DNA of 64,000 bases from Octopus sinensis. Taxonomy: Eukaryota. The stretch is from the NCBI RefSeq assembly GCF_006345805.1, contig NC_043001.1:87544001-87608000 (forward strand), written 5' to 3'. Of the stretch, positions 521-63,204 are shown one piece after another. Each line of letters opens with the position of its first letter. Positions within the stretch are counted from its first letter, which is position 1. The notes below the pieces were generated by a model. The model had not been told where the DNA came from, did not search any database, and saw only the letters and a list, made by a program, of their open reading frames with translations. A program made the position numbers and the translations under genes.

Positions 521-3367
521 TGTGCATATCTGTACTGTTCATACACTTTTGGCTACTTTTTTTGGTGAGCTGTAGTTACCTAAGCACTAATAAATTCATC
601 ACTATTATTATTTACATCACTTTAAAATCCAAAGTTTGTATCAGGGAACTATGGACAGTCTCAGGTGGGTTAGTATCAGAAAAGTTAAATACAATATCAC
701 ATCACAGACATCTAGGTCTTTTGGATTTATATGTGCTTCATTACTAAGCAAAAACCATTTGAATCCACTCCAAGTTTTCATTTAACTGTGACATTCAGAT
801 ATACAAATTTTCTCCTATCTTTCTGCCTCCATATAAAAATGACATTGCAACTGGAGTGTAAACAATTTTAAACAACCAACACATTCTTCCTGCTTCTACA
901 AAATGTTGTGACACTTTGGATGTTGACAAAGAAATAACAATAATAAATAAATAAAAGAACATTGATTAAAACTAACCAGGAAAACAAGACCAACAATTAG
1001 TATTTTACAAAATAGAATATTTTATTAAAATATATATCATTGTTTTCAAAGGGATGGGAAGTTGCAACAACAAAAGTCAAGTACAATAAAAAAAAAAAAA
1101 GTATCTATCAGATTTTTAAAACCTCCCTCTACAGCTTACACTGCTGAGAGACTATTTCCATCCCCCACAACATTTATTAAAAGCATATAACAAATATGGA
1201 ACATTTGGTCCTTACAAAATTTGTTGCAGATGGACCATATGGAAGTTTAACATTTGGTGTAACTGTTATAAAACTTCAATGCCAGAGTCTAAAAAAACTA
1301 GTGATTGTCAATGTTAATACTATTGCTAAGCCCCAGATCCATCTCCATTGACTGAATAGATCTATGATCAAAGGCAAGCCATCTCTGATTATTCACATTT
1401 TCTTTTTTAGGGGGGCTAGTGTATCCAGTACTACATCATCTAATTTTTTTTTCTTTCTAAGACAGTAGGTGTAATTTGAGAGAAATTTGGTCGCTATTTC
1501 TAGAAGGTCAAGTAACCAGGTAAAGGTTCCTTTTTTTTTGGCCTAAGGAAACTAGCAGTGATCTGTAGTGGCAAAGATCAGTTTAATAAATATTAATGCT
1601 TATGTGACTTTTGCCCTTTTTGGAGAAAAGAAATAAGGATTAAGAACTCTAATTGAAATGTTAACATTTTTTTCTTCTCATGGTACATAAAAGTGTTTCA
1701 GTTTTGAAAACTTTATTAGATTACAGAAGTAAAAAGAGAGTAAAAACTAACACAGCTGTAACAGTGTCACGTTACTGAAAACTAAGTCTTTTGTTATTAA
1801 ATTCTCTCCAGAAATTTGAGTACCATTAAGTCTATTTAAAAAGGTTATTTATTCATTTAAAGCTGAAAATATAAAGACACTGCAAATGGGTGATGTCTAC
1901 TAAGTCAACCATTGCATTGTATGATAGCATGATGTCTATTTGCCAGCAAGAGGATACCAGTTTCAATCCCACTGCATGGCAATCTAAGCAAGCACCTTTT
2001 ACCATAACCATATAAAAAAAATTAGGTAATAGAAACTGTACGGAAGCCTATTAAGGAGACCATTCCTTTTCTTTCATTGTAGATCCCTACCATCTGGCCC
2101 CCTGTTTCCAACAATACAAAAAAATAAAATAAAATAAATCTTTAAAAAATTAAAATTTCTAAGGTTACAAAGTTTGGAGGCAAATGCTATCAATTTCATT
2201 GATAGAATCTTATTTTATCAACCCTGGACAATAAAGAGCTAAGTTAATCTCTGTAAAATGCAAACTCTTGAGTAAAGAGATGTAACAAGGGCACAAAATT
2301 ACAATTTTTGGTGTGTGTGTGTGTGTGTGTGTGTGAGAGGGGAAGAACAGTTGATTATGTCAATCCCACTATTTGAGTGGTTCTTATGCGAGAGCCAGCA
2401 AGATGAAATAATTGAGAAGGATTAGAGAAATATGCAAATGTTTTCCAAAACCATGTAAGGCTTTCAAGGAATGTTCCTTAGCTAATAAACCAAGTGGGAA
2501 AATAAATAGAATGCCAGTCTGTTGGTTTGATACAAACAGCTTGTCGAATTGAAGCCACATAAAATTCAGTACATAATCCAAAAGACAAGTGATGGATTTG
2601 GATTCTTGACACTTGAGCAGGTAGTTTGACACGAGATATATAGTGGTCACGTTGCTTCTATGAGGCGGGATGGGTAAGTGTTAATTATGGAACCTAAGGT
2701 TATACATGTATGTTTACGAAGGAGAAATGATGGTAGATAGAAAATTCAAAAGTAACAGAAATGTAATGCCATTAGAAGAACAGAGAAAGGGAGAGTTTAA
2801 TAGTGAAGCAGTGATTGGAGAATATTGATGAATGAAGGCTTTACTACCAAAGAAGGTATTGCAATTTTTACTCTTATCTGTATCAGATGGTACACATGAA
2901 ATGCAGCGACATAATCATAAATAGTTTTCTAGTGTAAAGGGAATATTTCGGATGTACAGGACCTGCAAATGATCCCACATTATTTCCCAAGAAATCTTGT
3001 AATACTAGCTCTGCAGAGGTGTGTGTGTGCGAAGCAAACAGGTTGGAAAAAAATACCATGAGATAGTTATTCCGGCCCTCTGCATTCTGAGTTCGAATCC
3101 CGTCGAGGTCAACTTTTCTTTTCTTCCTTTCTGGGTCAATAAACAAAATACCAGTACTTGGAGCGATTTTTCTTTCTCTATCTTTGTTGTCCCTAGATTG
3201 TACCTATAATTCAAAGGTGCAACCTTGTCATGCGGATTTCACCAAAGAATTACGTAATGGTTACATGTGTCTGTGGAATATTCAGTCATATACACTTTAA
3301 TTTCTCATTGAGGAATTCAGTTGGTTGAACAACTGAATGCATATAGTCGAGACAGAGAATCCATCAT

Positions 3368-3423
<56 letters not shown>

Positions 3424-3945
3424 TCATCATCATCATCACACACACACACACTTAACTTTACAAATAAAAGGTACAGAAATGTATGCGGGTCTTGTCTAAT
3501 TATGTATGGGATCCTTCCTAAATGCGACACACGACCTCACATAGTACAGTGTGTGTATATGAATAGCGTATGCGTGTATACACAATAGTGTTCTTGTATA
3601 CCTGTGTACATGTTACCATAAACACTAACATTTATCAGGCCAAACTGAATATTAACATTAACTATATATAAAGCTCTCCCACTCAAGCCGGATGTGGGTA
3701 CTGAATAATCCATGGGTTTTGTCTCCTCTAAGACTGGAAAAAAAAAAACACTGCATAAGAATGAATGCATATTCTTGAATATGTACAGCACATATTGTTA
3801 CTGTGTATACGTATATTTGGAAAGACTTCCTTTTGTCCGAGGGGTACAAAAGGAGTCTTGCCGTTATATTTATATGTATGAATGTAATCATACACACCTT
3901 TCTAAGTGGATACGAAAGTGAAAGAATCTTAAATACTAAATCCGC

Positions 3946-3998
<53 letters not shown>

Positions 3999-4229
3999 TA
4001 GTGTGTGTGTGTATGTAGAACAAAAATTGAATACATGATAAATCAACCCAAGAGAAGGCAAGTACTTGTTGCTGACTGGTAGACTACAAAAATACATGTT
4101 TAAAAACGAAGATAAAAACTTGAAATGATTAATTATAATTACAAAAATGAAAGAAAAATGTTCAAATACTTAAACAATTAATGAGGTATAAAAACTGTCA
4201 TGTTTACATAAATTCCATAGGTTTTGTTT

Positions 4230-5486
4230 TCAACAGAGAGGTTGTGTTTCTTGTTTAATTCCAGACACATCGGTCGTAGTTTCGGTCATTGTTGGCGTCA
4301 TGTCGCCTGGTGATGACATCTCAGCACAATTTGAATCTAGTAACTCTGGGTCGGCTTTCACGGACATTTTGCTACAACCCTGATCCGGATAGGAACTAGG
4401 ATTAGGTTCCACAGGGTCACTTGGATGTACATCGGACCTTTCATTGTCTGTCAAACTGGAGTGGACAGCGGAAGTATTTGCAACTCTGCAAGTTCGGTTG
4501 TTGTCGGAGAGAACTTGTTTCTGAAGACTGAGTACTAAAGCAACTAACTCTTCTTTCTCTAGTTGTAAAAGACTTTCTGTGGTCAGAAGTTTACCGAAGT
4601 TTGCTGGCTTGGAATGTTGCAATTCCTGGCTTTCGACTAAGCTACAAGATTCCATTCCTGACCACATTGATATATTATCAGGAAGAGTAAAACTCGTCGC
4701 GCCGTGTTCGACATTCCTTAAGTCTGAGGGGCAACCGGCTGCATACAAAGGTACCACTGCATCTGTAGAATTATCTATAGTCTCTAAACTGAAAGAACGA
4801 TTACTCAGTTTGGACGAAAAAGGTGTTTCAAAGTTGTTCGTTAACCAAGCACTTACCAATGCTGTACTTGACGTAGGGTCGGTTAAGTTCGGCTTTTCTT
4901 GAGGAGTGGATTCATTGGATACACTTCGAGTTTTATTAGATTTCAAATCAATTTTTTTCCATCTTGCTTTTCTTGCAGCCCTTTTCCTTGGAGGATTATG
5001 TTTAAATTTATTTTGTTGTTTGGAAGATTGTGCGTTTGTTGTGCGTTTATTGGCTGCTTTCAGGCGCTGCATCTTCGATCTTTTTAAAAGTTTCATTTTA
5101 TTTTTAGTAGAGGTTTTAACACCAGGTTTGGTTTTTTGGTAATTGTTGAAAGGTTTACGCAACGGAACTCTAAAATAACCAGAGTTATTGAGGGATGTAT
5201 GATGTACTGGAAGAGTAGGCGGCAATGTATTAATTATGTTTTGGTTATCCGAAGTTTGAAAACCATAATGCATCGAATGTGAAAATGAAGCGTATCCAAA
5301 TCCTATATTTTTTCCATTCCACGAATGTATATATGGACTGTTAATTCTACTGTTGGTAGAAGGTGGATGCCAATAATTAATGTTATTATTTGTGGGATAT
5401 CTTCGGACCTGGTTGGTATTATTATTGTTGTTCTCAGCGCTACTAGGAAGGACGAAGTTAAACCGATCTCCCGGACGACGATACAT
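4230..5486 (-). CDS. 418-aa single-exon ORF, uncharacterised; weak HEXIM-like similarity (basic region plus coiled coil)
   Basis: 1257-bp uninterrupted non-repetitive ORF in ~35% GC (estimated) DNA with ATG and TGA. Basic segment KHNPPRKRAARKARWKK and segment TTESLLQLEKEELVALVLSLQKQV. Coding status is well supported; the HEXIM assignment is only about 0.35. Confidence 0.8.
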   Translation of the reverse strand: MYRRPGDRFNFVLPSSAENNNNNTNQVRRYPTNNNINYWHPPSTNSRINSPYIHSWNGKNIGFGYASFSHSMHYGFQTSDNQNIINTLPPTLPVHHTSLNNSGYFRVPLRKPFNNYQKTKPGVKTSTKNKMKLLKRSKMQRLKAANKRTTNAQSSKQQNKFKHNPPRKRAARKARWKKIDLKSNKTRSVSNESTPQEKPNLTDPTSSTALVSAWLTNNFETPFSSKLSNRSFSLETIDNSTDAVVPLYAAGCPSDLRNVEHGATSFTLPDNISMWSGMESCSLVESQELQHSKPANFGKLLTTESLLQLEKEELVALVLSLQKQVLSDNNRTCRVANTSAVHSSLTDNERSDVHPSDPVEPNPSSYPDQGCSKMSVKADPELLDSNCAEMSSPGDMTPTMTETTTDVSGIKQETQPLC

Positions 5487-5860
5487 TGTACTGACAGTAC
5501 TAATTCTGCAACAAAACTATTTCGTCAGAATTTTTTATAGATCTCGTCAGTCGAATAACTTTCACTTCCCTAGAAACTTTAACTTTCACTTCAACTTTTT
5601 CTCAGTCTCACGTGTAAACTACGGAAACAACCGGAAAAGTTTCCGTAACGTTCTTCCTTTTCTTTTAAGAAATTATCGCTACTGTTTCATCTGTATTTCG
5701 CAGCGAATTCTTTATAAATTTTCTTTTTTATAGTCTGTGGATAAAATATAAGCGCATATAATGTTAGTTAAATCAACGTAGCCGCAGTGAAGTTACCCAT
5801 GATGCTGCGCGCTTGACCTTGTCAGTACTGTATTGCTACAGCTAATACATTGTACGAACC
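5487..5860. promoter_or_regulatory. Putative bidirectional promoter between the 418-aa gene (-) and IFRD1 (+)
   Basis: The two ATGs are ~500 bp apart and divergent. CpG retained and repeat-free. CACGTG at 5609, CCGGAA at 5631, Staf/ZNF143-like TTACCCATGATGCTGCGCG at 5793, Inr-like TCAGT at 5822. Confidence 0.6.
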
Positions 5861-5989
5861 ATGTGTATGTTCCTCACCAACAAAATCAACAAATTCTATT
5901 ACTTATATGAATCTGACTTCCATATACGCACGTCTGACCAATTAGTAAGATCTTTTAGCTATAGCAGGACACAACATATAGGAGAATAA
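5861..5989 (+). CDS. Upstream ORF (42 aa, MCMFLTNKINKFYYLYESDFHIRTSDQLVRSFSYSRTQHIGE*) of IFRD1
   Basis: ATG at 5861 has A at -3 (gaaccATG). Its stop TAA (5987-5989) shares its last base with the IFRD1 ATG (TAATG). Mammalian IFRD1 has a known regulatory uORF. Confidence 0.6.
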   Translation: MCMFLTNKINKFYYLYESDFHIRTSDQLVRSFSYSRTQHIGE

Positions 5990-6010
5990 TGCCCAAGGGA
6001 AAAAGAAAAA
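5989..6010 (+). CDS. IFRD1: IFRD1 coding exon 1 (MPKGKRK)
   Basis: ATG CCC AAG GGA AAA AGA AAA A|gtaagt; resembles the MPK-basic N-terminus of IFRD1; phase 1 matches exon 2. Confidence 0.8.
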
Positions 6011-9000
6011 GTAAGTTTTCTTTCGTAATTTTTGCAGGCGTGAGCATTTTGTGGCCAAAAAATGGGTGACCAGTTTGAATAATTCCTGACGTGTAAAGTC
6101 GTTCCCTGTCTTTGTGACCGCCTATGTCGGTTATTGACACCAGTTGCCGTGGCATGGCCGGCTTTGATTATTACAAATGTGGCGGGATTTCACATGATCC
6201 ACACACTCACCTCTTTCTCTCTCTCTCGCCTAAATTTCTTTTCATATTCTATTCCGTTACTACCGATACCGTTTGTCTTCACTATTTCTTATTCGTTATT
6301 TTTTTTCAAGTTACCATTGATATATATTAACACCCATGCCATATTAGTCGCTAAGAGGTTGTAATTAGTCATTAGATACACATTATCTCGGCTACATTTC
6401 TTACTGTAAATAAACAAATAAAATTATAATTGAATATATTAAATTTATTGTCCTGTAGCGAGGTATGGTTCTTAGCCATTTATCAGGTGATAATATATTT
6501 GGTGTACGTTAATCTATTTAGTGTGTGCTTAATACATTTAATGTACGAGCCAACGCGGGAGCCTCTGTGCGTTCATTCGGCTTGCTAGAAATATTAACTA
6601 AATCTTACTCAAATCGCACCCTATCGATCCATTGTCAAATTTATCCCCTGATATGCTAACAAAAAAAGATTGGTCACTCTGTAACGGTATGATCATAGGT
6701 CTACTCGATAAGGGCGGCCTGGGGCCAAACAACTGCTGTTGCGTGTAACGGATGTACGTATGCCCACCCCCGACTTATGTAAGACGTGATTATCTAATAC
6801 CGTAGAAGGTGATCCATAACTGAAAACCAACGTAATGTTTTGGTGACCCCACTCAGCTTTGTTTAGGTAGACTCAAGGTACATAGGTTAAATTATTATCA
6901 TCTAATAAAAGAAATTATATCTATGTCAAATCGGCTACAATTTCTAGCGGAGTTCTTTATGCAACCTTACGTATTCTTTATTTCTGAAATCATCCTTACA
7001 GTTAAAAAATAGAATAAAACGTATAAGTATTCTGTTCTTTATTGGTCAATCCCTTTTACTGAATGGGGGCCACGATTTCCGATGATTTAAATAAACCATG
7101 TGTCTCTGTTTGAGAGGCAATGGGGAGTTTATTGAAGGGAGAGTTTCGACCTGCGTGCTGACCAAGCTGGGCGATTGACAAAATCGTTGACACGCGTGGT
7201 CTATATTGAAAGGACTCTTGCTTAGACCCCACCTGGTCTAGGCATGGCCAACCTGTTTCGAGAAGTGGGCTGCATGAAAAATGGCTCATCATCAAGCGAT
7301 CCACACTAAAATAATTCAAAGTAATGCGGGCCGCATTTTGCCCATGACTGCTATAGACAATCTCCCAACATGTAGTGATGGACTCTTTTGATTACTATCA
7401 GTTAACTTATTGGTACACCTCTCTAGTTCCATGCTTCTGTTTTTATAATAATGTTTTTCAAGGCATCACGAACATATAAGGACATTGATTCCGTTATCTG
7501 ATCACAACCGCCCTAAGTCTTCCACCACCTACGCTGTCGCTCGCTCGGTTTAAGGACAAGCGGTCAAATTTCCTTGATTTATACCTTTCGATTTTAAAAG
7601 GGGACATATTGGCGCTTTTCGTTAATACTGCTATTCCCTCCTCTTAGAAACAGGTACAAAAAATAAAACATAGTATTTTATCCTCTGCTGTATAAATATT
7701 GACAGGTGTATTTGTAAACCAGTATATGAAACCAGGTTTCGGACTAACTATAGAATGAAATAATTTTTAGATTACCGACAGGTGACTAGAAATGCTTCAA
7801 GTACTGTACACTGGGTTCATCATAACAGTGAATGTATTTCACTGAGAAAAAGAGTGAAAAAGGTTTTCTGAATGAAAATTGAGTGTTATTTAATTATTTA
7901 TTGAAAATAGCTATCCAATATTAACATCTTTTAACTTAAATACCTGTTAAAATCCATCAAAAGCGGGTCTTATTTAAACGCAAAATTATTTGCGAAGATC
8001 CTGTTGGAATAATGGAAACGTCATCACATGGATGGCTTTAACAGTTGTTTGTTTCATAGGTGGGTGGCCTGTGAAGGTTGAGGCGGCGGCGGACAAATTG
8101 CCATGTGAAGTAAAATTAAGATCATTTTAAAACTTGTCCAACACTGACGAAGAAAGAATAACATGAGGACAATTTCTTTCTGTTTTGTTGTCACTTTCAT
8201 GACATTTCTTTAATATTGTTTTTGGGGAACGTGGAAACCACCACGTTATAGTGTCTTAGTCGGCTGTCTACTGCCCTCTACTTTCACGTTGGAAGATGAT
8301 CATTTTCTAATAATTTCGTTTTTTCTTCGCTCATGAAAGTACTAAAGAACAAAAATTTTAGATAGTAAGACTCTGCGTCCGTTGCCTTTTGCTGAAAAAG
8401 AGAAAAAAAAAAAAAAAACACGCACACGTCTAAGAATATTGGCGATGCATCTCAAGTTGTCTTTATCTGATGTCTACATTGTTGGTTAACTGAATTCCTC
8501 TGTTCCTCCCTAATAGTGCATCTACCCTAGCTAGTGCCCTTCATTAGCTGAGTGTATTTTCATTGTTCCACCCCTTTATCTCTGTTGCCCCCACCCCTGT
8601 TAACATGCGCATAGTTTTCTTAATTTTACCATTCTGGTTGATCGAACCTTCCTCTCCCAGATGGTGGTGGAAGTAGTTGACAACTCAGACTGTTGCATCA
8701 GCCCAAATGCCTACCAAGCAGTTAAAGCTATGTAACATTAACAGATGTTATCGTCAGAAATATGGCAAAACACCCAGTTTTCAGTAGCACTATATTGCCA
8801 ATAATAGTGATCTCGAAACAAGCACAAAACCACATGTGCAGTGAGTAGGATATAATCGTTTTGGCTGGCCCCTATGGACACAATAAGAAAGGAAAACAAA
8901 GTCGACCTTAGCGAGATATGAACTAGCAGTGCAAAACCATTTTAACTAAATATTGTAAGGCATTTTTTTTTTGTTGGGCGTTCTAGCAATAATAATTCTA

Positions 9001-25800: not shown

Positions 25801-28800
25801 GCATATATAACCAACAATATATTCAACAACTAATGATTAGTAATCGCATCATCAAAGTCTTGCATTTCATCTAGCCACCTTAATTATTATAATTTTCACT
25901 GTACAGCTGGTATTTGCTTGCCACTAATGATGGTATTTTAATAGTACCATCATTCTTATATTTATTTATAAATATATAGATAGGTAGATACAGAAAATAA
26001 TAAGGTAGCTAGACTCAATTCAAAGTCAAAAAGGAGATAATTCACCATCACTAAACAGTGATAAAGTGTGCAGGGGTCACCAATATGGCTAGAAATAAGA
26101 ATGAAAGAACTTTTTAGCCACAGAAAGCACATTTTTTTTTTATTAACTGACAGGGGAGACAACCTCTCCACCATAATTGAGTAGCATTCGATTGGCATGC
26201 CAATTTTGCATGAAATTTGATGGTAATGTGAAAATTATAAAATAATTAAGGTGGCTAGATGCAAATCAAAAGAAATAATTCACTGTCACTAAACAATGAC
26301 TTCACTACCCACAATGGAGTAAACATCTAGACATTTTAATTATTTTATAATTTTCACATTACCATTTTGTGGAATCAGCCACTGATTCCTATGGTAAAAT
26401 CTATATATACTGACAGAGTAGAATTTAACTTAACCAGCTTCAATGCCACAATGAAGTGAGTATTACTTGTGGGCATTAAATTTCATGCGAAATTGGCATG
26501 CCAATCTAATGCCACTCAATTGTGGTGGGGGTGTTGTCTCTCCTGTCAGTAAACAGAAAATGTGCTTCCTGTAGCTAAAGAGTTCTTTGACTCTTATTTC
26601 AAGCACCCTTTGTCACTGTTTAGTGATGGTGAATTAAAGATATATATGTGAAAGACTGGAAAAATTTGGTATACTTTTTTATAACATTCACCAGAAATTT
26701 CAAATTTATGTATGCCTAATTCAAATGAAACCTCTATACATATGATAAATTTAATTACTGTGAACATGATGTGCTTCATGAGGACACAGCTTGGATTATA
26801 GCCCCTTGCACACACACACACACATGTAATATATATATGTATCCATTCTCTTATCCATCCGTTTTAACTAGCCAACCTCTGTATCTGGTGTTCCTTCGGT
26901 TAGCATTCTCAGTCCGTCTCCTTCCTTTGTTGTTGTCTTTAGTCCTCCTCTTCATCTTTATCTTTCTTTTTCTCTTGCAAATATTCTGCAGTGAAGGAAA
27001 GTAATTTCCTCAAATGAGGTAATTCAAAAATATTTAAATCTAGATATGTGATCTTAGACATAAACAAATAGATATATTTACATGTGGCTATAAAACAGAT
27101 GAGTTATGGAAAAAGTATTTGATATTCTCTTTTGCTTCTCTTACATGTAATTAATTTGTGGTTGCATTCTGGCTTAATTAAAATGTGCTATCGCTGTTCT
27201 ACTTTCATTTATCTACGCTTGTGTGAATAGGATAGCTTTTGCTAATTTGAATTTAAACATTGGGAAAATTGTTCTTAGAGACAAATGTGTAGTAAAAGAA
27301 AATTCTTAATAATGAAGGTGGTGTTCTGGCATGGCCTTAACTGTGATAAACAAGAGGTAAAATTGTCATTCTCCCATCAAGCAGCTCACCTTAAACCTGG
27401 GTTGCTCTGCACTGTCAGGATTAGTGTTTAACGTTTTCTCTTCTGTGATGTTTACTGCAATAAAACATTTTTTTGACTTTTATTTTCAATGTTTTCTTTC
27501 TTTTTAACCAACAATTTTTTTCTCTTTCTCTTTCATTGACAGCAGGTCGAAGAGGGGCTGGATCACGTCCCTCGAGTGACGATGAAATTGACACACCTGA
27601 TAACCAAAGCGTTGTCAGTTCCATATCAGATGATGGTTACTTCCATCCCATTGCTGAAGAAGGACACGGTAATTATGTGTTATTTTTGTTATTATTAAGG
27701 TAGGGAGCTGGCAGAATTATTAGAGCATTGGAAAAACTGCTTGGCAGTATTTCTTTTGGCTCTTTCTATTCCGAGTTCAGCTCCATCTGACATCAACTAC
27801 GCTTTCCATTCCCCCATGATTTATAAAATAAAGTAACAGTCAAGTACTGTGGTTGATAGTATTCACTAACCTCTTTCTCCTCAAAATTATTTTGTGTCTT
27901 AATCAGAAGCCATTATTAAGATGATGAATAGTAGATATGGTAGTGTCAGATTAAATACCTTGCAACATTTAGTTACATTAGTGTATGCTCCAAGTAGAGA
28001 TCTCTCTTTTGTTTTTTCTTTCATTCCTCTAGGATTGGTATAGTTAGTTTAGGTTATGTATCAGTGTTGGAATATTTCACTATATCGCTTAACTTTCAAT
28101 TAAAAACTTATGTTTAGTATGTCTAAGAGCTTATGAATCGACCTTGTACTAATGTAAATCATATTATTTATTTTATATTATAATGAAGGCAGTTTGACAG
28201 GGTTTTTTTTTTTTGTTAATTTGAACATAATTGTGGCATAGTGTCTTTATTTTGTTTTGTTTTTTTATTTTACAGTTGACAGGTTTTCGTATTATTAATT
28301 CAAGTGATGAAAGATGTCTTTTTTTTATTAGATAAGCATATGCTGAGTTGTATGCCCTGCTAGAGAGCTGATCATGATAACTAGTTGTAATAAAGTTTTA
28401 ACTCCTGGTCAGTCTGTGAAACATTGGTGGCTCTTAACCTGTCAGCCAGCCTGAAACAACTTTTGGTTCTGTAATGCATGCTTCTTGTTTTAAAGTGGTC
28501 TAAATGAGAACTTACAATTAAAATTTCATGTTGATTTTTCTAAGCACTAGCTTAATTATAACAGTTATTTTATTCCATTTGTCATAATTTTCAAAATTAA
28601 TTGAGGCAGAGGCAGTGTATTTCAATAGGAACATTATGGCAAAATGATTAAGTATATATTGGGTCATCCCATAAATAATGCAGTTTTTTCAATTGCATGA
28701 ACTAAAAGTCGGAGGGGGACAGGATAAATTACCGGCATCAACTTGCTATAAAAGCAGGTAGTAATTTTACTTTGTACTTATTCTTAGTGCAAATGTTGAA

Positions 28801-31800: not shown

Positions 31801-34800
31801 GATGCACAACACAATAGCAGTAAGGTTTTTAAATTTATGACCATCTTACTAGTCCAGCACCTTGATCAAAACAAACATTCTTTATATCAGCATCCACATG
31901 TTTAAATAATAGCCTTTAAAAATTCCACTAATTGAAATTTAGCTATAATCAATTTTTTTTTTATCTGTGATATCTGCTAAGTGTTGTGGAAATAAAAAAA
32001 CAACTCCTGTCATATCAACTGCATCATAATAGAATCATTAAAAGAACAAATATATGTAATTTTATCATAAAATAATAATAGTGATTTATAGTGAATCTAA
32101 GTGCCTCTGCTTCTATAAATGGCGATGTTTGTGGCCAAATGCTTTTCTCAAACCTATTTTTTCTTTGATTATATTCCAGTCAACAAACGCGTATCAACTG
32201 TTTAAACAACCTTATCAAAGCTCTTTCCACCAAATACATTTGTGACTTTCTCTTGAATGTGTGAGTAGATCCTCTTTCATTTCTTTCTATTTTGTTGCTG
32301 TAAACAGTTTTATTGGATAAAGATCTGGGAAATGCTACACTTTGTTTTATATAATGAAATGTACTGCAGCTCGTTTTGAGTGAGGCCAACAAAGATAGAG
32401 CTTGCTTTGATGTTTGATTGTACTTTCAATATTTTCACTAATAATTTGCATCTTTTCTTGTAGTTTACTTTATGACAGCACATAGTCTTGTGGTTAAGAT
32501 GTTTACTTTGCAATCACTATGTTCCAGGTTCAGTTTCACTTAGCATAAACTTCAGGTAGATTTAAGCTTTGTGAATGAAATTAGGTAGAGGAAAACACCA
32601 GAAAACTTTCAGATTGGCTGCTTGCTGTGATCTGAAGGTTCAATCTTGTCATATTGTGCTGTGCTGGTTCTGCTTGAATATAATTAAGGGAATAAACACC
32701 TCATTGATGTTTTGAGCTGTCTGGGATGCATTGAACTCATATTCATAAACAACACGAATTTTTGTATTCATGGGTTCATAAAAATTGATTTACTAGAGAA
32801 AACTCACAATATAATCAGACACCATGAATTGCATTTTGAAAAGTGATGATGTAACTTTTCAATGTTGTAAAACAAAGAATAGTCAGGATAAACATTAGAG
32901 TTAACGGCTGTCTAACTTGGTGCTTATTCCTAAATCAGAAACTTATTTCTAGTTCTTTCTGTTGTGGGTCCAAATCCAGTTGAGACTAACTTTTTTCCAT
33001 TCTTCTGGAGTCAATACTATTCAAGTGCTAGAGCCAATGATATCAACTAACATCTACCCTTCAGAATTGCTGGCTTTGTGCCTAATTCAGAAACTTATGG
33101 TGGCAAGCTGGCAGAATCAGTAGAATTGTATTGCTTGTTACTTTGTGAAATGTATAACTATCTCCTGTTTCTGTTCTTCCTTAAATCTGTTTTAATGCCT
33201 CCTTAAGAAATGATGATAGTGAAATCTGTACTAAAGATGAATAATATTACTGTAATTTTGTTGACATTTCCAAGTTCATATCCTAACATCCATTCCAGGC
33301 TTCAGAAAAATGCAGTGGTGGATTGGCAGTTGTTCCAACTCTCTAGTGTTCAAGTTCAAGACCTGCCACAGTCAATTTTGTCTTTCTTCATTTTAGGGTC
33401 GATAAACCGTAGTACTATTCCAGGCTGGTTATCATTTAATGTTTGTTCTCCATATTGGCATAGGTTGGATGGTTTGACAGGAGCTGGCAAGCCAGAGGTC
33501 TGCATCAAGCTCCACTATCTGTTTTGGCATTGTTTTTACTACTGGATGCCCTTTTTAATGCTAATCAATTTACAGATTGGACTGGATACTTTTTGTATGG
33601 CACCAGCACTGGGGAGGTCTGTTTTGTCATGCTTTTTATGGTTAGATGTCCTTCCTAATGCCAACCATTTTACACAGTGGACTGCAGGCTTTTTATGTGG
33701 CACCAGCATAGGCAAGGTTTGTTTCGACATGGCTTTTACAGCTGGATGCCCTTCCTAATACCAACCACTTTATAAATTGGACTGGGTACTTTTTATGTAG
33801 CACCCAGTCCACTCTGTAAACTAGTTGGCATTAGGAAAGCAAGCCTTGGACAGAATGCCTTGTATCTTTCCTAGCTATGTTTATCCTATGTTCAAATCTT
33901 TCCATCATCACTGTAAAACTGACGTATTTGTCAAAAGTTGCAACCATTGTATAATGTCAGCAATTTGAAAAACCATTGGAAACACTGTTTCTTTGATTCA
34001 TTTGGAAGATTGACTGACACCACTGTCACCAATATGAGGTTAAAAAGTATTTATTGAATTCTTTAAGACTACCTGGATCAGACTTAATCCCAGAAATTTA
34101 TCTCTTTCTTTCTCTCTCTCTCCCCAGCAAATTCACAATTGTAGAGAGTCTATTACGTCTCTTGAAGAAGGGCAAATGTGAGGAACAGGTACTGGCTGCC
34201 CATTGTGTGGGTCAACTTTTTGTCCAGCTTGGAGAAGACAGCAAAGACTTGTTTGAAGATGTGCGAGAGACGTTGATGCACCTGCTAAATGACCATGCCA
34301 GCTCTGTAAAAGCTCGTCAAAAGGTAACCATTAATTATAGGATAATTTTGACACCTGAAAAATCTTGAATTTGTTGACCATGTCATAGGTACAGCTACAT
34401 CTCGCCACTAAGCAGTGCAAGCACAGTGTAGACACAGGAGGCTTGAGTCAGAGTACTGGATATCTGTCCAAAGGGATTGGAATCAAATCCTGTCTCTACT
34501 ACTCCATTGTATCCATAACCAAGACACATGATTGTCAACAGTTCAATCCACCTAGCTGTAAGTATGTACTACACAATATTGTGAGTGCAGTATTATAATT
34601 AGCTGGGTACCACTCTGTATATAAGCAATGGCCATACTGATTTTTTCTGTCATTGATTTTGTTGTCTTACTTTGTAGTGTTGTTCACTAAATTGCACATC
34701 ATGTCTACATTATTAGTGCTTCTGTTATGACTCAAGCACTGCACACTATCAAAAGAAGTGCCACCATTATAATGTCTACTAATAAGTAACTGGACTTGGT

Positions 34801-37800: not shown

Positions 37801-40800
37801 TGAGAAGCAAACTGCTTAATCACACAGGCATGCCTGCACCTTTATTGTTATAATTATTAAGACCAGGAGAATAAGTTATGTACTTAAAAACAAGGGTTGG
37901 CATCAGGAAGAGTATCCAGCTGTAGAGTACTGTCTCAAGAATTTTTGTCTCATCAATGCTAGCATGGAAAAAGGGCAGATATAAAAGTGGCGATACTAAT
38001 ATATATCTATTGTAGAATATCAGCCCTTGCTATATTTGGAACAAACAAATTTATCCTTCATCTACAAAGAAGCAATTTTCTAGTTTTAATATTATACACC
38101 TTGGAAAGGCAGTGAGCTGGCAGAAGCATTTTCATGCCAGGCAAAATGCTTATCACTATTTTGTCTGTCTTTACATTCTGAGTTCAAAATCCACCAAGGT
38201 TGACTTTGCCTTTCATCTTTTCAAGGTTGATAAATTAAGTATCAGTTGAACACTGGGGTCAATGTGATCAACTTAGCCCCGTCCCTCGAAATTGCTGGCC
38301 TTGTGCCAAAATTTGAAATCAACATTATATTCCTTGTCTGTTTTAATTGTCTTTTGATTCATATTAGCTGGAATGCGCAAGTTCATAATTGATGATGATT
38401 ATGATGACTGTACTATTTTACCAAACGTCTGTATTTGATTTAATATTTTAATAAAATTATCCATTTATTTCAGATGATGCGTAAAATCATGGGTTCACTG
38501 GAGCAAGTATTCAAAGAATCTTACCTGAAGAACCAGAAGGCCAACACCAACCAAAATGATCCTTTCTCTAGTCTCTATTCTAGTGCTTTGTCAGCTTGGA
38601 CTTTACTACTATCAATTGCACCCAACAGCTACATAGCAGAAATGGTTGACAGGTTTGTCTTATAACTATTTACAAAATCACATGTGCATGTTCACTCACA
38701 CATTTCCTCACTGTTGGAGTCCCATGATTTTGGGACACCACACTTAAAGATAGGTTGGTCAACTTGAAATGCCAATTTATTTCATTTGATCAGTCAGAAT
38801 TAGAGAGTAAGCTGATTGTATGAACACCAAATTAGAAGTTAAAATTGTGGATTCTTCTTATAATGTTTGATGTGCTGTTTGTCATAATAACATATGTCCT
38901 GCACATCAGGACAGGCATAGATGTATGGATGAAAAAATTGCTTCCTATCCATGTTGTTTCAGATTCAATCCCATTGTATGGCACCTTGGGCAGGTATCTT
39001 CTAATGTAGCTTGGAGCCAACCATATTGTTGTGAATGAATTTGGTAGACAGAAGCTTCAAGAAGTCTGTTGTATGTGTCTTTGTTTAGATGTAGCTTGAT
39101 GGTTGTAAATGAGTGTCATTTGTTTCTAGTCTTTTGTGAAAAACGTATCTGGCCATGGGAAAATATTACTTTGCTTGGAAATTAGTGAAGTTTGGTGACA
39201 GGAAGGGCACCTATTTGTAGAAAATTGGCCTCAGCAAATTCTGACCTATTCAAGCATGGAAAAGTGGACATTAAAGCAATGAGGTCTAAAATACAACAAA
39301 AGATTTTCTGTGAACATGTAGAACAAGAGGAGTAAAAAACGAGAAGCAACTTTAACATGACTTACCTGTTTACTGTGTTTGGCTCCTCATGTCTCTTTTG
39401 TGACTTGTAGCAACATACGTTTTCTGGTAGATCTGCTGAATCACTCTGTTTTCAAACAACTCTCATCTAATCTCTCTATCTTAATTAGCATTAGAAACAT
39501 ATTTTTGTTGCAGTTGATAAGAATGATTGTTGAATGGCAAAATGCAATTTTCAAATTACATGTGTGTATGTGGCATGGCTGTGTTGTTTGGTTAAGAAGT
39601 TAGCTTTGCAACTACATGCTTTCAGGTTGAGTCCCACTGTGCAACACCCTCGATTTTCTACTATAACCTAAGGTTGACCAAAGCCTTGATAGAAGGAAAC
39701 TGAATGAAACCAATTGTGTTTACGTTTGTGTTCTGTGGAAGTTGCAAGCTATGAGCAGTGTTGTCACTTCTCTGTCAACAAAATGTTCTCTTGCTGTGTA
39801 CTTTTGAAGATGTTAAATATGACCTTTATCTGAAAAACAGGTAACGGTTACTGACAGGTGAGACATCCAGCTGTAAAACACTGTCTCAATAATATATACG
39901 TTTAAGCCATGCTAACATTGAAAAACAGCAAATTTACTAAATTTCAATCACAAGGCAATGGTCAGTCTGAGGCTTTAATAGAAGATATTTCTTCAGGTGC
40001 CATGCTGTGAAATCAAACCCAAAATCACGCGGTTACGAAGCAAACTTCTTAATTATATGGCCAAACTTGTGCTTATTGATTTTTCATGAAGCAAGAAAAC
40101 AGTTTGCTGTATGATCTAGTTCCCTCCAAATCTTTGATGTAGCATGTGATGGTGAACCTTTTAGCCATCATATTCGTTGTTGGCATTAGGAAAAGCATCC
40201 ATCCATGGAACCCATCACAAAGAAGACATTGGTACATGACCCACAATCCTTTAACTTGTCAGACCTTGTCTAACTGTCTAGATACTGATGATGATATCAC
40301 AACAGTTGTAAGAGTCCCATCTGAAAAAGTTAAGTTTAGTTTTGTTTTTTTTAATTTTTAATATGTATATTTTTATGTTGTTGACTGTAAAATTATATTT
40401 CTGGAATTTTAAAGTTAGATCATCTTGTACATGGCAAACAGAATTCGGGTGTGTACACACAAACTATTATTAAAAATTTTTTTTTTTTTGCAGCCATTTG
40501 GGTAATGTAATAAGTATGTTAGAGAGTCCAGATGTGGAACTAAGAATTGTGGCAGGAGAAACTATTGCACTGATGTATGAATTACAGCGAGGTATTGACC
40601 AGGTAAATATACTTGCCCTTTATCTCTCTTTTTCCCTCTCACTATTTCCCTAACTGCTACATTGAACTAACTGCCTTTCCATATCTAACCTGTGTTCAGA
40701 CTTTAAGTCTTGGTTTGGTCAGTTAAATAAGTTCCTATAATCTGCTGAAGTCATCTATTCAGGAGATAGAGTTCCTTCCTTTGTTTTCAACAAATCATAT

Positions 40801-43800
40801 AAATGTAAAAATGAAATATTATCTGTACAACATTTAGTTTTGCTTCTCTATATTAGCAGTTTTAATCCTTTAGTCAACTTTGCATATCATTGTTCTGCAA
40901 TTGAAGATCTAAGTACAAGTCCTGTACAAGTGTTTGGTTTTTCATCTATACTCCACCCTTTGTTATAATCTAAGAAATCCTTGTAATTACAAAGAAATCT
41001 ACAGGCTAGCTTTTGACAGTCAATTGAAGTAAAAATTATTTTGTTTAATATTCCTTTAATGATAAGAAAACCATGAACAACATACATTTTCAAGCCACTA
41101 CTTTAAATATTAATGAAAATGATTTCTAACATGAGGATAAAACCACATGCTTTTAGGGGTGGATGTACTTTACTAGATCAACCTTATACTTCATTGATGC
41201 ATCTTTTAACAACCTTGGAAGAGTAGCTGTCAGTATATCAGTTTCTTTCTGATTTAACATTAAAGTCTTGCTTTTTATCCTAAAGCTAATAAAATAAGTA
41301 CAAACAATATACCCCTCCTCTATAAAATGTGAAAATGTAAGAAATCTTTAAAGATAGTTGAGTACTCATCTAAATATCTTGCTTAATGCTGAGTTCAAAC
41401 ATTGCTGTCAGCTTGGTCATTCATTCTTCTGTTCCCAATGAAATAAGTACCAGTCACTCTACTAAACTCCTTTGTCACTTCTCTAAAATTTGTAGTTTCA
41501 GACCTACTTTAGAGATTATTAAAATCCTTTTTTTTTTTTTTGTATAATTATTACTAATCCACTTTTTTTGTGTGTGTGTCTCATTAGGATTTTGAAGGTG
41601 ATGATATTGTAAGTTTATGTGAGATGTTAAAACAGCTGGCTACTGATGGCAGTAAACATCGTGCCAAAAAGGATCGGCGGCAGCAAAGATCTACCTTCAG
41701 AGGGATATTGAAGTTTATAGAGGTTAGTATTGTTATTACTGTTCATTACAATATAACTTTTTGCATTCTATTGTCATCTCTTTTGTGAAATTTGGCATCC
41801 TAAGATTAGCTTTCACCACTTCTGCCATGTCTTTCTTAGTCATTCTCTCCCACATCTCCCATTTGAATCTCTTGGCACTTCTTTACCCAGCTGCCATCAT
41901 CATCATCTATATGCAATACATCTCCATAGCAGTGCTGTCTTCTTTCTTGTACACAGCATATGAGTAGGACTGGTGATGGCTTTCCTTTTATACATAGTTT
42001 TTCTCGTTTTTTACAGCTTGCATCACCTTAACTTTGCTTTAGCCTCTCAACACCATCATTGTTTAATGTCATCATCATCATCATCGTTTAACGTCCGCTT
42101 ACCATGCTGGCATGGGTTGGACGGTTTGACTGAGGACTGGCGAGTCAGATGGCTGCACCAGGCTCCAATTTTGATCTGGCAGAGTTTCTACAGCTGGATG
42201 CCTTTCTTATCGCCAACCACTCTGAGAGTGTAGTGGGTGCTTTTTATGTGCCACCGGCACAAGGGCCAGTCAAGCGGTACTAGCGACGGCCACGCTCAAA
42301 TGGTGTTTTTTATGTGCCACCTGCACAGGAGCCAGTCCAGCGGCACTGGCAACGACCTCACTCGGATGGTGCTTTAACATTCCACTGGCATGGGTGCCAG
42401 TCAGGCAGTGCTGTCATCGGCCATGTCAGCGATTTTGATTGTGATTTCACTTGCCTCAACAGTTCTTCTCAAGCAAAGTTTAGTGTCCAATGAAAGAAAG
42501 GTACACATTAGCATGGAAAAAGGACGTTAAACGATGATGATGATGATGAAGTAGGCTTGTTACACAGCTGGCATGGCCACAGGTTATGGTCTCACTTGGC
42601 TTGCTTGGTCTTCTCAAGCACAGCATATTTCCAATGGTCTCGGTCACTAGTCATTGCCTCAGCGAGGCCCAATGTTCGAAGGTCATGCATCACCACCTCA
42701 TCCACAGATTCCCTCAACTGCTAGGGTGTGACACTTTTTCACACAGTTGTCCTCACCCATTCACACCACATGACCATACAGCGCAGTCATCTCACTTGCA
42801 CACCACATCTGATGCTTCTTAAGTCCAACTTTTCTCTCAAGGGGCTTACACTGTCGTGTATGCACACTGACATTACACATCCAGCGGAGCATACTGGCTT
42901 CATTCCTTGCAAGTTTACATATGTCCTCAGCAGTCACAGCCCATGTTTCACTACCATGTAGCATCGCTGTTCATATACATGCGTCATACAGTTTATCTTT
43001 TACTCTGAGCAAGAAGCCTTTTGTTACCAGCAGAGGTAGGAGCTCTCTGAACTTTGCCCAGCAGCTACACTTTCGGAGCATCCACGCCCTCTACTGACTT
43101 TGTCACCCAGGTAACGGAAGCTGTCAACTACTTCTAGTTTTTTCCCTGGAATGTGACAGAAGTTGTTCTCTGCACATTTCCAGTGTTTATTGCTCCTATC
43201 TTCCCAGTTAGCATTCCTTTGATATTGCTTGCAACTCTTATGTGTCCATAACTTGCACTGGGTACATCTTATAGAGTTTCTACCTACACCTTTTCTACAG
43301 ATCGAGTAGGGCCATCTACCTGATTGTGGTTTGTCTGCCTTCCTACTTATTAAGACTTTGGTTTTACCTAGGTTGACTCTAAGGCCCTTCAATTCTAATC
43401 CTTGCTTCCACACCTGAAACTTCTCTCTAGTTCTGATAGTAACTCAGCAATAAGAGCAAGGTCATCAGCATAGAGGAGTTCCCAGGGGCATCCTGTCTTG
43501 AATCCCTCTGTTATTGCCAGGAGGACTATGATAATTAGGAGGGGGCTGAGGACTGGACCTTGGTGGACCCCTACCTCTACATGGAATTCTTCACTACTTG
43601 TTACCAAACCTCACGTTACTGACAGCATGCCTGTACATGGCTTGCACAGCTCTCAGTAACCATTCATCTAGCCCTAGTTTCCTCATTGACCACCAGATAA
43701 GGGATCGGGGGACCCTGTTAAAGATTTTCTCCATGTCAACAAAAGCCAGGTACAGGGGTTTATCTTTGGCTAGGTATTTCTCCTGCATCTGTGTTAACAG

Positions 43801-46800
43801 AAATATAACATCAGTTGTGCTTTTCCCTGGCACAAACCTAAACTGCATCTCATCTAGACCTCCATGAATTTCATTACCTGATCCAAGAGCTTGATACCTC
43901 TGTAATTATTTGTATCTAATGCATCACCTTTACCTTTGTAGCAGTTGACTATGGTGCTGCTACGCCAGTCATTGAGTATGACTGATGTATCCTGTGCTTT
44001 TGTTGTGCCATTTGATCTCCTGCATGTTTTAGCCCTGTTCATTTATACACACTTGTGTTTTAGGTATCAACTGATGTACCCATTATTTCAGTGATGTGAT
44101 TATATATATATATATATATACTAGCAGTATCGCCCGGCGTTGCTCGGGTTGTAAGGGAAATAACTATATAAGCATTTTTAGAGAGTTATAGCCAAAAAAT
44201 AGCAAAAAAATGCATTAAAAATTGGAAAAAAATTAAGGTAAATTTTTTTTTTTAATTGTTGACACATCGTAGGTATTTTTAGAGAGTTACTTCCCTTATA
44301 TAAAAGCAAAAAAATGCATTAAAATGGAAAAATATGATGGTAAATTTTTTTTAAATCGTAGACGCGCGCTAATACCCAGAAGGGCTCGATATGAATCACG
44401 ACTATAAGATACCCGCTTTTGGTTAAACTGCACCGCAAAATGTGGGAGTAGTTACGAATCTAAATCGTAGGAGACAGACACAACTTCACTCTTATATAAA
44501 GATGCTTTTTTTTTTCAGTCATAGAGTTAGATTTATGAAGGTCTTCAGTAGAAAATCCTTTGAATTCTGAATCGCTGCTTGATATAATGAAATTCGTATC
44601 CATTTTTTGTCAGAATTACAAATTTTGAAAACACAATAGGAACAAATTTCGGAAAAAAATCTCCCATAATTCACGGAATTAAAATTACACTTCGATTTTT
44701 GTACAAAACTGTATTTGAAGTGTTTACGAAGTATAATACGTGTTTTCACGAATATACTAAAGAGATTTACTCTGATATTCTCATTTAAATATGAATAGGT
44801 AAATTCGGGCGGTTTGGTAATGAAAGGGTTAAACGGATGCATACATTTATTAATAACTATATATAAGTGTCATCTGTTTATACATAAACACTGTTTCATA
44901 CTTTCAGTTTAGTCTTCCTCAAATCACTCTGTCGCTATTTACTCTCTTCCAAGAACATTTTCACTCACTCTTATCTCTTAGCTTGCCATAGTTTAGTCTT
45001 CCTCAAATCACTCTGTCGCTATTTACTCTCTTCCAAGAACATTTTCACTCACTCTTATCTCTTAGCTTGCCATACATTTTACTCATGTATCTATCAGCGT
45101 GATAGACAGAAACAAATATTACATCGCCATCGCATTCTATTGTCTACCTGTCAACAAAGACACAGTGAATTAGTTTCACTTTATTCGTTGCACACTCTGT
45201 GTGTGTGTGCGTTTGCGTGTGCTGTAAACCAGACTAAGAAAAGCATTTGACATACACACCAGAATGTGAGTTTTCTGTAAATTTTGCTTAATTGGAGTTT
45301 AAATTTTAAAAACTGGACCTGGCATGATCCGATGCATTCTACTCTTAAAAATGCTAGGTAAATTGTAATTGAAGAAATCCTATATTGTAGATTTCTATAA
45401 GTGACAAAGGGAGGCAGATAAAATCTGCCTTTTATAATAAGAGATATATATATACACACTAGCACTATAACCCAGCAATGCCGGGTCATAGTGCTAGTGC
45501 ATGCATATACAGCTGCGTGCGTGCGCACATACACGCGAGTACTGTCCATATCTCCGACCAATCACATACAGCTGGCTGGCATTCAATTGGCTTATCAAGT
45601 TTTGGGCATTTTGATAGGGTTTTGGATAGAAAATTCACAAAAATATCACGTCTATTGATTTTTTTAATGGCTTTGCGAGGCGACTGAGGAAATGTAAAGA
45701 TGTGCACGACCACCCTTGGACGGTTTTGAATGACCATAGAAAGTATGAGCCCTCTAACTGAAAAATTGTGAATTTGTATTAAGGACACGCACACACACAG
45801 ACCGAAATTTTGCCGTTTATATATATAGAGATAACTGTATTATCACTAGACATCCTCTAATCTCAAGTTTGATGTCCCTATTGTAATGTTTTAATATGTA
45901 TGTTTGTGTATCTATTCTTGTAGGATTTGGAGAGTCCTGCTGACATGATCAAATTTGGACCAGAGTGCCTTTACCTAGACAGCTGGGCGAGGAAGAAACA
46001 GTACGATAGCTTCTGTCAAGTTCTTGGGTCAGGTACTCCTCAACATTTTCAGGTAAATTCAACAATTTTAAGCCCTTCACCTCATTTTCACAATGTAATT
46101 CCTACTTTACTACCTCACGTGTGTATTTAAGTGTATGCATTGTATATGAATACTTTTAATTTTTTCACTGATTTCAGTCGTTTTACCATATCTATGTTGG
46201 GGGTTCAAAACCTTAGTCAAATATATCTGCCTCATCCAGTGTGGTTACTCGTTCTATTTTCCTTTATTTACCGAATGCCTGGGTTTAACTTAACTTGCCT
46301 TTACTACTAAGGAGTTATCTCTCCTTACGAAGTAAAATTGTTCAATCTCATCTAACGTGTGCAAAGCTTAAATAAGTTGAGTTGAGATGGAATATACAAT
46401 GAAACATTTTACATTGTTAAAAGAATAAACATTACACATTTCTAATGTATTGAGTCCTTTATTGAAGTATAGTCTTCGAACGCTAGCAATGTATGGGTTA
46501 ATGATTTTATTTATAATTAATACTTCTGCCTTGATGTTTATAATATTTTTGATTTTGTTCATTTATTCATTTGTCGATTTTCTTTGTATAAAGAAAATTC
46601 TGCTCTAAGTTAAGTGTCAACTGTTTCCACCAATTATAAAGATCTTTTGTTTGCTTGTTTTTTTATTTCATAATTTGTCTCTTCTTTCAGGCCAACTATT
46701 TGTTGAGGGATGTCTTTGACCTTGGTGCTCCTTTACTTGAACTAGATGGCTTCAATCATAGACCAAAGAAAATGACGAAGGGAGAACGGGTAAGTTTATT

Positions 46801-57739: not shown

Positions 57740-59055
57740 CTAGTATTTGATACCTTCTGATTCTGCTTCTTCTTTAATAAGAGTGGTAAGATTGACAGAG
57801 CTTATAGAATTAATGGTTTGTTCAGTTGATGTTGGTAATGTCTCTAAGTTGGTTTCAATACTAGAATCAATAACAATAGGATTGAATTCATTTTTTAATA
57901 GAGATGTTGCTGGAAGGAGTGACGTAGATGTTGCTGAAACTGATGTTGAGTAAGTATTGTTGAATAAGAGACTAGATGATAATGAATGAGGTGTTGACAT
58001 AAATAGATTTGGGTCATGCTTCCTTTTCATTTGTCGACGACCACATTCCTTGTCACTGAGATATTTACGTCGGTTCTGTAATGCTTCACCGAGTCGAATC
58101 CAAACAAACTGCTTGTGCCGACTCAACTGTGGTGCAGCGCGACAGATATAGCGAAAGAAAATTTCTTTTTTTTCTGCAGAAATCATCTTCAAAGGAGGTG
58201 CTCTGTGCCATATTTTTGCTGTTGTAGCAGCCTCTCTCAAAAGTGAGCGTCCGAGTCTCTGAGCTTCAGTCGGACGACCTCTTCGTACTTTCCTTCGAAG
58301 TAGCTCTTCAGCAGTGAATTCTTTGATTCGGCATGCACCCCAGCCATCAACAATATACACATCATTCTGAGGATAATCAACAACATCATCATCATCTTCT
58401 ATCACATGTGTCTGAACTTCTCCCTGTTGTATGAGTGTAGTGGATGTGTCTGAAGTTTTAGGAGAAGAATAAATAGCTGTATCAGAATTGACAAAATTAC
58501 TGACAGAAAGTGAGTTTGAATGCAATGAAGTTACAACTCCCACTTCTGAATCTTGCTGCTCTGTTGGAATAAAATTGTTAGTATGGAGTGGTGGGTTCTG
58601 GATATCAGTCAGTTGTGACATAGTGGTATTTGGACTGGGTTTTTTCTGTTGGTTTGAAATAATAACTAGTGGAGATGTTTTGTTGTAAGATTCCAGGTTT
58701 ACTGTTTTAGTGGGAAGAACATGTGTGACTTGGGTCAGAATGGGTTCTGGTGTGATTTTGGGAGAGGGCAAAGGTATTATAGCTTTGGGTGTTGATGTCA
58801 CAAATGTTTGTGATGGCAAAGTTATTGGTGATGAAGATAAGGATGTAGATGCTAGAACTGAGTGGGGATTTGATACAACAGAGCTGCTCACTGTTGGAGG
58901 TGCAATGGTCTTTGCTAAACGGCATGAAGAGTTGTTTGGACCATAAAGTTCTCGAAGCAATTTCCGAATTAAAAATCTATCCTTGAACACTTCAAAGATA
59001 TCTTTGAGGTCGGCATCAGTAAATTCCAGCAGCATCTCTCCTTCTACCTGGTTAT
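57740..59055 (-). CDS. Terminal exon of an uncharacterised SAM-domain protein with RGRP (AT-hook-like) motif; 5' exon(s) not located
   Basis: 1.3 kb open frame. Acceptor ttctatgtttcag|AT AAC CAG at 59055 (phase 1). Starts with the C-terminal half of a SAM fold (DNQVEGEMLLEFTDADLKDIF...RFLIRKLLREL), then an S/T/P-rich linker, KVRRGRPT and a ~110-aa helical block. Confidence 0.8.
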
Positions 59056-62769: not shown

Positions 62770-62777
62770 GGTTCGTG

Positions 62778-62866
<89 letters not shown>

Positions 62867-63109: not shown

Positions 63110-63204
<95 letters not shown>

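Follow-up and report, generated by a model that had tools for sequence, protein, structure and literature searches.

An intronless open reading frame (ORF) of 418 codons, at positions 4230–5486 on the minus strand of a 64,000-nucleotide (nt) stretch of Octopus sinensis DNA (hereafter, the window; contig NC_043001.1, positions 87,544,001 to 87,608,000), is in our reading what HEXIM has become in octopods: a gene that has stayed at the ancestral locus, beside the gene IFRD, and diverged beyond profile detection. We put the probability of this reading at roughly 70%, because HEXIM lies beside IFRD in other invertebrates and because a conserved helix of the octopod protein resembles part of HEXIM. 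A first-pass annotation of the same DNA had suggested that the ORF may be an extra, lineage-specific HEXIM paralogue with a degenerated PYNT motif, a status that our analysis does not demonstrate. In animals, HEXIM and 7SK RNA together form the main brake on P-TEFb and so hold back paused RNA polymerase II; the PYNT motif and residue Tyr271 of HEXIM are regarded as the key innovations behind strong pausing.

Coding status and position beside IFRD

The ORF is a real protein-coding gene under purifying selection. It runs from ATG to stop as a single-exon coding sequence of 418 amino acids (aa) plus stop, is uninterrupted in four octopod genomes (three Octopus and Argonauta), bearing out the earlier description of an intronless gene, and has an intact frame over 345–418 codons across them. 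The three strings on which the likeness to HEXIM was originally built are present: RKRAARKARWKK at aa 167–178, DPTSSTALV at aa 203–211 and TTESLLQLEKEELVALVLSLQKQVLSDNNR at aa 302–331. A homology search returned three relatives, all from octopods: an 84%-identical protein from public sequencing runs of another Octopus species, an O. vulgaris protein, and a 57%-identical protein of Argonauta hians that carries no name beyond ‘uncharacterized protein LOC115211816’. The deposited O. vulgaris protein, a ‘Hypothetical predicted protein’ of 280 aa (L002 10001-10843, OX597818.1), begins at an internal methionine; the O. vulgaris genome holds the full 418-codon frame, the same length as in the window, and the window is ~97.5% identical to O. 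vulgaris chromosome OX597818.1 over 15 kb.

The ratio of nonsynonymous to synonymous substitution rates (dN/dS) is 0.30 against the 84%-identical Octopus orthologue and 0.22 against Argonauta, where synonymous divergence (dS) is about 1.2–1.4, and because of this purifying selection we regard the ORF as a functional gene. Constraint varies along the protein, with a dN/dS of 0.06–0.18 in a core of 135 aa (201–335), about 0.3–0.4 in the N-terminus and basic region, and 0.57 in the C-terminal tail. In the alignment, the parts protected by selection are LVSAWLTNNFETPF (aa 210–223), a 36-residue block (aa 242–277) and a helix (aa 300–331).

In both Octopus and Argonauta the ORF lies head-to-head with IFRD, as the first-pass annotation had seen. 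The start codon of IFRD is at 5989, and the neighbour is identified by the Pfam IFRD and IFRD_C domains that its orthologues carry in Argonauta and O. vulgaris. With the octopus IFRD exons as queries, we fetched IFRD loci from other invertebrates; no cephalopod IFRDs were among the returns of this search. In the annelid Paralvinella palmiformis, a single-exon HEXIM of 310 aa (L008 8392-9324, minus strand) is divergent from IFRD at a distance of 676 bp and scores 28.3 bits (E=2.4e-6) on the Pfam HEXIM family, PF15313. It has RRKTRRGKKKYR, APHNSNQFLIED, FLQKDFEDVY...REQELI and a terminal coiled coil, and an identical gene is found on an independent metagenome contig. A further eukaryotic contig (L010), whose IFRD is closest to that of Paralvinella at 50% identity, has a HEXIM-like frame at 1648–2457 (minus strand), again divergent from the IFRD exons and carrying APHNSTQFLMED, FYEQDFEEFYKSSREAELSNMTRDELIANVISM and FYEQDFEEFY...TRDELIANVISM. 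The assembly appears to consist of polished long reads, and the frame contains one in-frame TGA (1975–1977) and possibly a frameshifted N-terminus.

HEXIM had been named for the octopod ORF from its sequence alone, before the synteny was known; were the ORF unrelated, the odds of finding this same family in the slot would be about one in however many gene families there are. Both the Paralvinella and L010 HEXIMs read P-H-N-S where vertebrates read P-Y-N-T (Tyr203 to His, Thr205 to Ser), possibly the form that the Cdk9-binding motif takes in lophotrochozoans. A metagenome scan for HEXIMs of this PHNS type returned Paralvinella itself and nothing else.

Protein regions and their proposed HEXIM counterparts

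The sequence similarity that supports a HEXIM origin lies in an amphipathic helix at aa 285–336 (ELQHSKPANFGKLLTTESLLQLEKEELVALVLSLQKQVLSDNNR; 4479–4634, minus strand), delineated by hhalign, a helix hidden Markov model (HMM) and AlphaFold2. It matches FLQRDF..Y..ESLQNMSKQELI..YLELEK..ENNR of HEXIM, the start of the cyclin-T-binding and dimerization domain, and the conserved octopod helix (aa 300–331) reads LLT.ESLLQLEKEELV.LVLSLQKQ.LSDNNR. The helix HMM, which represents the HEXIM FLQRDF...NNRLR segment alone, scores the octopod proteins at 5.9–7.2 bits and the window ORF at 7.2 bits, a value equalled by none of 1,000 global shuffles, by 0.05% of shuffles confined to aa 285–340 and by 0.1% of heptad-preserving shuffles. 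By these sequence comparisons, the likeness to the HEXIM pre-coiled-coil helix appears significantly beyond chance (p≈0.0005–0.001); as a match to that element, aa 303–325 beat 99.9% of composition- or heptad-preserving shuffles. BLASTP against human HEXIM1 reproduces the alignment proposed earlier, with 13 of 35 positions identical (E=0.015 for the pair), and the hydrophobic positions of the helix pair one-to-one with those of HEXIM1. With hhalign, 53 columns align at 30% identity, a second run covering the same 40–53 columns, and HEXIM1 Tyr271, among the four residues on which inhibition of P-TEFb is said to depend crucially (bioRxiv 10.1101/2023.02.19.529146), falls opposite the invariant octopod Phe297, so that an aromatic residue is kept at this position. 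The invariant Asp-Phe of the HEXIM F-x3-DF-x3-Y pattern is replaced by Ser-Lys.

AlphaFold2, run on a shallow alignment, gives a mostly disordered model (mean predicted local distance difference test score (pLDDT) 40, predicted template modelling score 0.17) with confident helices only at aa 127–160, in the basic region, and aa 303–336. The sole helix predicted in the region of the HEXIM coiled coil spans aa 311–336 (pLDDT 64–75). The distal HEXIM coiled coil is not predicted by AlphaFold2, and in its place stands an acidic tail rich in serine, threonine and proline (aa 337–418; 4233–4478, minus strand), which has a net charge of -10, evolves fast and is predicted to be disordered, with a pLDDT below 50 and no helix.

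The PYNT-type motif appears essentially lost from the octopod protein. In our HEXIM alignment (A4), AP[YH]N[TS]xQFL is invariant, the human motif being 202-PYNTTQFLM-210. The segment to which this motif had been aligned by the first-pass annotation, DPTSSTALV (4854–4880, minus strand), is probably not its counterpart: an ungapped sliding-window score for the HEXIM motif places it only 11th–55th of about 400 positions, it is predicted to be helical, at the start of a helix spanning aa 204–219, and its Argonauta counterpart is DITPSTQLV. The idea of a degenerated PYNT therefore holds in that no PYNT-type motif is detectable, and fails in its choice of segment.

The best residual match, VEHGATSFTLPD (aa 259–270; nt 4677–4712, minus strand), falls within the most conserved block of the protein (aa 242–277, DAVVPLYAAGCPSDLRNVEHGATSFTLPDNISMWSG; 4656–4763, minus strand), C-terminal to the basic region and N-terminal to the helix. 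This near-invariant octopod block reads DAVVPLYAAGCPSDLRNVEHGATSFTLPDN(I/L)SMWSG, with a single I/L difference across four sequences; variation between Octopus and Argonauta is limited to I272. When the three octopod proteins are compared with AP[HY]N[ST][TN]QFL[MI]ED by BLOSUM score without gaps, VEHGATSFTLPD ranks first in each of them, with a score of 20.6 (next best, 12.0; p≈0.04–0.05), where true motifs score 52–58. In two BLASTP pairings, Octopus with L010 and Argonauta with Paralvinella, the same segment aligns to APHNS(T/N)QFL(M/I)ED. Under this alignment Phe208 is kept, and Pro202 and Thr205 are not; if a relic of the motif exists, it would be HGATSFTL in the invariant block. The acidic autoinhibitory region of HEXIM is likewise not reproduced by charge count: the segment between DPTSSTALV and the helix has a net charge of -5 over 90 aa, and the acidic region of HEXIM1 has -13 over 43 aa, or -16 over 65 aa.

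The basic region at aa 127–179 (KNKMKLLKRSKMQRLKAANKR...PPRKRAARKARWKK; 4950–5108, minus strand) is likely a nuclear localization signal and/or nucleic-acid-binding segment and the counterpart of the HEXIM basic region. Net charge is +22 over the 74 aa from 127 to 200, AlphaFold2 predicts helices at aa 127–160 (pLDDT 72–81) and 167–179, and BLASTP recovers the weak alignment to the KKKHRRRPSKKKRHWK stretch of HEXIM1 that had been noted before (E=0.21). The basic RNA-binding region of HEXIM consists of two Arg/Lys stretches with a conserved Pro-Ser between them (PMC12901311). This split two-arm pattern is not present in the octopod basic region, and the annelid HEXIM from Paralvinella likewise has no Pro-Ser. 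The HEXIM-like H, PP and W of the basic stretch are not conserved in Argonauta.

Vertebrate HEXIM1 and HEXIM2 (PF15313) resemble the octopod protein in being intronless, in their variable N-terminus and in the order of basic region, linker, conserved motif and amphipathic helix (...ESL..(S/E)K.EL(I/V)..(Y/V)L.L.K...NNR). In contrast to them, the octopod protein scores 0 on PF15313 (human HEXIM1, 204 bits), has neither PYNTTQFLM nor the Pro-Ser-split double arginine-rich motif, has one helix of ~30 residues against a bipartite coiled coil of ~100 residues in HEXIM1, and carries an 80-residue invariant block with no HEXIM counterpart. The PHNS-type HEXIMs share its slot and orientation relative to IFRD and its single exon of ~300–400 codons, and in HGATSFTLPD and the helix segment ELVALVLSL (versus ELIANVISM) the octopod protein resembles them more than it does vertebrate HEXIM. 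Unlike the octopod protein, however, they have retained the distal coiled coil along with AP-H-N-S-x-Q-F-L and FxxxDFxxxY, and Pfam recognizes them. Non-animal HEXIM-like sequences also have no Pro202, Thr205, Phe208 and Tyr271 set, but are read as stages that precede the inhibitory function (bioRxiv 10.1101/2023.02.19.529146), whereas the octopod state would be a secondary loss inside animals.

Origin and possible role of the gene

Several results weigh against a HEXIM origin. A Pfam scan of the ORF protein gave no family at E<=10, and an exhaustive HMM search with a four-sequence octopod profile against 1.84 billion representative proteins returned octopod sequences only and no HEXIM. On the HEXIM HMM with filters off, the whole octopod protein scores -1.1 bits, a value equalled by 46–80% of shuffles and exceeded by the reversed sequence. 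On the Pfam model, whose gathering score is 29 bits, the positive control, human HEXIM1 (its domain 100% identical to database HEXIM1), scores 203.8 bits. The first-pass annotation had named the lack of a profile match to HEXIM as a refutation, and on this outcome alone the idea would have been dismissed. The hhalign probability is 1.2% against 17 vertebrate HEXIMs and 3.2% after two invertebrate HEXIMs are added, BLASTP of the octopod protein against annelid HEXIM finds nothing collinear, and the best match to an HMM of the PYNT motif (-4.6 bits, equalled by 40% of shuffles) is at neither candidate site. The synteny is based on two non-mollusc loci, one of them with an in-frame stop; the loci of Tegillarca (L007) and Mytilus (L012), as well as L009 and L013, have no HEXIM but end before the 5′ end of IFRD and are thus uninformative. 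The promoter elements that octopods share (below) were not found in the intergenic regions of Paralvinella or L010, and the Logan contigs carrying the 84%-identical orthologue are genomic, thus uninformative on transcription.

The claim of HEXIM likeness draws support from synteny and the helix match of ~1e-3, and is opposed by profile searches and whole-protein similarity. The ORF has the single exon and positional orthology expected of a HEXIM; the profile match, the PYNT motif and the acidic region are absent. With an HMM that includes invertebrate sequences, it has the best non-HEXIM domain score among 3,651 six-frame segments (8.1 bits). A HEXIM homology search had vertebrate HEXIMs only among the matches listed, and a PDB sequence search with the ORF protein gave nothing relevant.

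All formal homology tests being negative, the ORF could be an unrelated octopod orphan, born de novo from the bidirectional promoter or of untraceable origin, that replaced a lost or relocated HEXIM beside IFRD and resembles it by coincidence. The family is confined to octopods and is mostly predicted to be disordered, coiled-coil starts of the S/T-x-x-E-L type are common, and bidirectional promoters are generally known as cradles of new genes. We nevertheless consider such an origin unlikely. It needs the family guessed from sequence to be, by chance, the syntenic family in two other invertebrates, and it needs a chance helix match at p≈1e-3 even with heptad composition preserved; moreover, the low dN/dS over the 135-aa core, together with survival since the Octopus–Argonauta split, is less typical of young de novo genes. 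Far less probable still is a non-functional ORF, whether a chance frame, a pseudogene or an untranslated part of an antisense transcript from the IFRD promoter. The O. vulgaris annotation calls only 280 aa, and the 830 nt downstream of the stop (3400–4229, minus strand) contain no AATAAA or ATTAAA despite being AT-rich, but the frame is intact in four genomes at the dN/dS given above for Argonauta, and 36 consecutive near-invariant residues would be inexplicable without translation. Because of the selection analysis, we set this explanation aside.

Synteny and helix speak equally for an extra, lineage-specific HEXIM paralogue, in which case a canonical PYNT HEXIM would perform the usual function elsewhere in the genome and this copy would modulate 7SK, cyclin T or HEXIM, or act as a decoy for them. 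Almost all animals have HEXIM, and its key residues have been tied to the control of pausing (bioRxiv 10.1101/2023.02.19.529146). To lose PYNT from the only copy would therefore be a drastic change, and it is plausible that a second, canonical copy exists, with which the retained helix could heterodimerize. Yet the gene occupies the ancestral slot beside IFRD, as a stay-at-home copy and not a new insertion would, and the octopod profile found no similar protein (including in octopus proteomes, if these are in the library), so any duplication would be old. We consider this reading possible but less likely than our own. The lineage-specific paralogue originally proposed is not supported, and the position argues for a descendant of the ancestral HEXIM gene itself.

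Two other identities were rejected. A basic leucine zipper (bZIP) transcription factor does not fit, the basic helix (aa 127–179) and the hydrophobic helix (aa 303–336) being ~125 residues apart and the protein having no Pfam bZIP match. LSMEM1/2, the vertebrate neighbours of IFRD1/2, were set aside, as the protein has no transmembrane segment and no Pfam match.

As a HEXIM descendant, whether the octopods' own HEXIM or a copy left behind at its old locus, the gene would be transcribed divergently from IFRD from a common promoter of ~500 bp. It would have kept the single-exon structure, the first helix of the domain for cyclin-T binding and dimerization, and a strongly basic segment that probably serves nuclear import, RNA binding or both. 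Gone would be the distal coiled coil, the acidic autoinhibitory region and any recognizable Cdk9-binding motif of the PYNT type, and a block of ~80 residues (aa 203–283) under very strong purifying selection would be new. We envisage the product as a nuclear, largely disordered adaptor that may self-associate or contact a cyclin-T-type partner through the retained helix but would not block the Cdk9 active site as canonical HEXIM does. Its main partner-binding surface may be the new invariant block, which would either contact Cdk9 in an altered manner or bind another partner. The suggestions of the first-pass annotation, a part as decoy or activator and co-regulation with a ribosome-silencing factor, are speculation; ribosome silencing is a property reported for vertebrate IFRD2.

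A broader proposal is considerably more tentative: that IFRD and HEXIM form an ancient bidirectional pair, from annelids to cephalopods, and that octopods have no canonical HEXIM at all, the sole descendant being without the distal coiled coil, the acidic switch and the motif that blocks Cdk9 but having a new invariant interaction block, with control of P-TEFb and pause release rewired. A 7SK RNA with the HEXIM-binding GAUC hairpin has been reported in lophotrochozoans (PMC2995076), and the ancestral system should therefore have been present in the octopod lineage; in the window itself, Rfam gave no matches and there is no 7SK. If HEXIM descent holds, the octopod protein would be either a natural separation-of-function variant showing the roles of HEXIM apart from Cdk9 inhibition or, should it be the only copy, a sign that a large-brained invertebrate lineage regulates elongation differently. 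The searched literature held nothing on HEXIM in octopus or molluscs and nothing on HEXIM–IFRD linkage, and as far as it shows the divergent pair would be an unreported ancient linkage. Looking beside IFRD would also be a workable route to HEXIM orthologues too diverged for profile searches. The case carries a caution as well: all standard profile tests are negative for a gene that, going by synteny, belongs to the family.

Shared promoter, IFRD and other features of the window

The 502-bp intergenic region common to the ORF and IFRD (5487–5988) is a putative bidirectional promoter, delineated by a three-species alignment. A CACGTG E-box (5609–5614) and a 22-nt GGAAAC...GTTTCC palindrome (5623–5644), ~125–160 bp upstream of the ORF start codon, are kept in Octopus and Argonauta and are probably core elements of this promoter.

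The coding part of IFRD exon 1 (5989–6011, plus strand) encodes MPKGKRK before a GTAAGT donor; this first coding exon of only about 8 codons is followed by an intron of ~21.5 kb. Further exons lie on the same strand at about 27542–27671, 34096–34344, 38495–38623, 40495–40599, 41588–41722, 45936–46058 and 51370–51438, and the gene, ~45 kb long, ends near 51,440. Despite saturation of synonymous sites between Octopus and Argonauta, their IFRD 5′ leaders (5795–5991, plus strand) still share ~95% identity. In the window the leader contains a 42-codon upstream ORF (5861–5989; MCMFLTNKINKFYYLYESDFHIRTSDQLVRSFSYSRTQHIGE) whose TAA overlaps the IFRD start codon (TAATG), an arrangement that suggests translational control of IFRD by termination and reinitiation. 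None of the fetched IFRD loci, whether annelid, bivalve or other, contained the upstream peptide; mammalian IFRD1 is also under upstream-ORF regulation.

The IFRD introns contain two copies of a locally GC-rich interspersed repeat of ~1.1 kb (42792–43861 and 49447–50521; 83–84% identical), which also occurs in the Argonauta locus (L001 46-1065) and is probably a transposable element family common to octopods. Downstream of IFRD, in a locally GC-richer stretch, a second long ORF (57740–59107, minus strand) encodes 455 aa rich in serine, threonine and proline, with no Pfam match and with a charged, conserved-looking segment ...RIKEFTAEELLRRKVRRGRPTEAQRLGRSLL.... Microsatellites of the (TA)n and (CA)n types lie at about 3300–4020, and more are present at 62768–63217.

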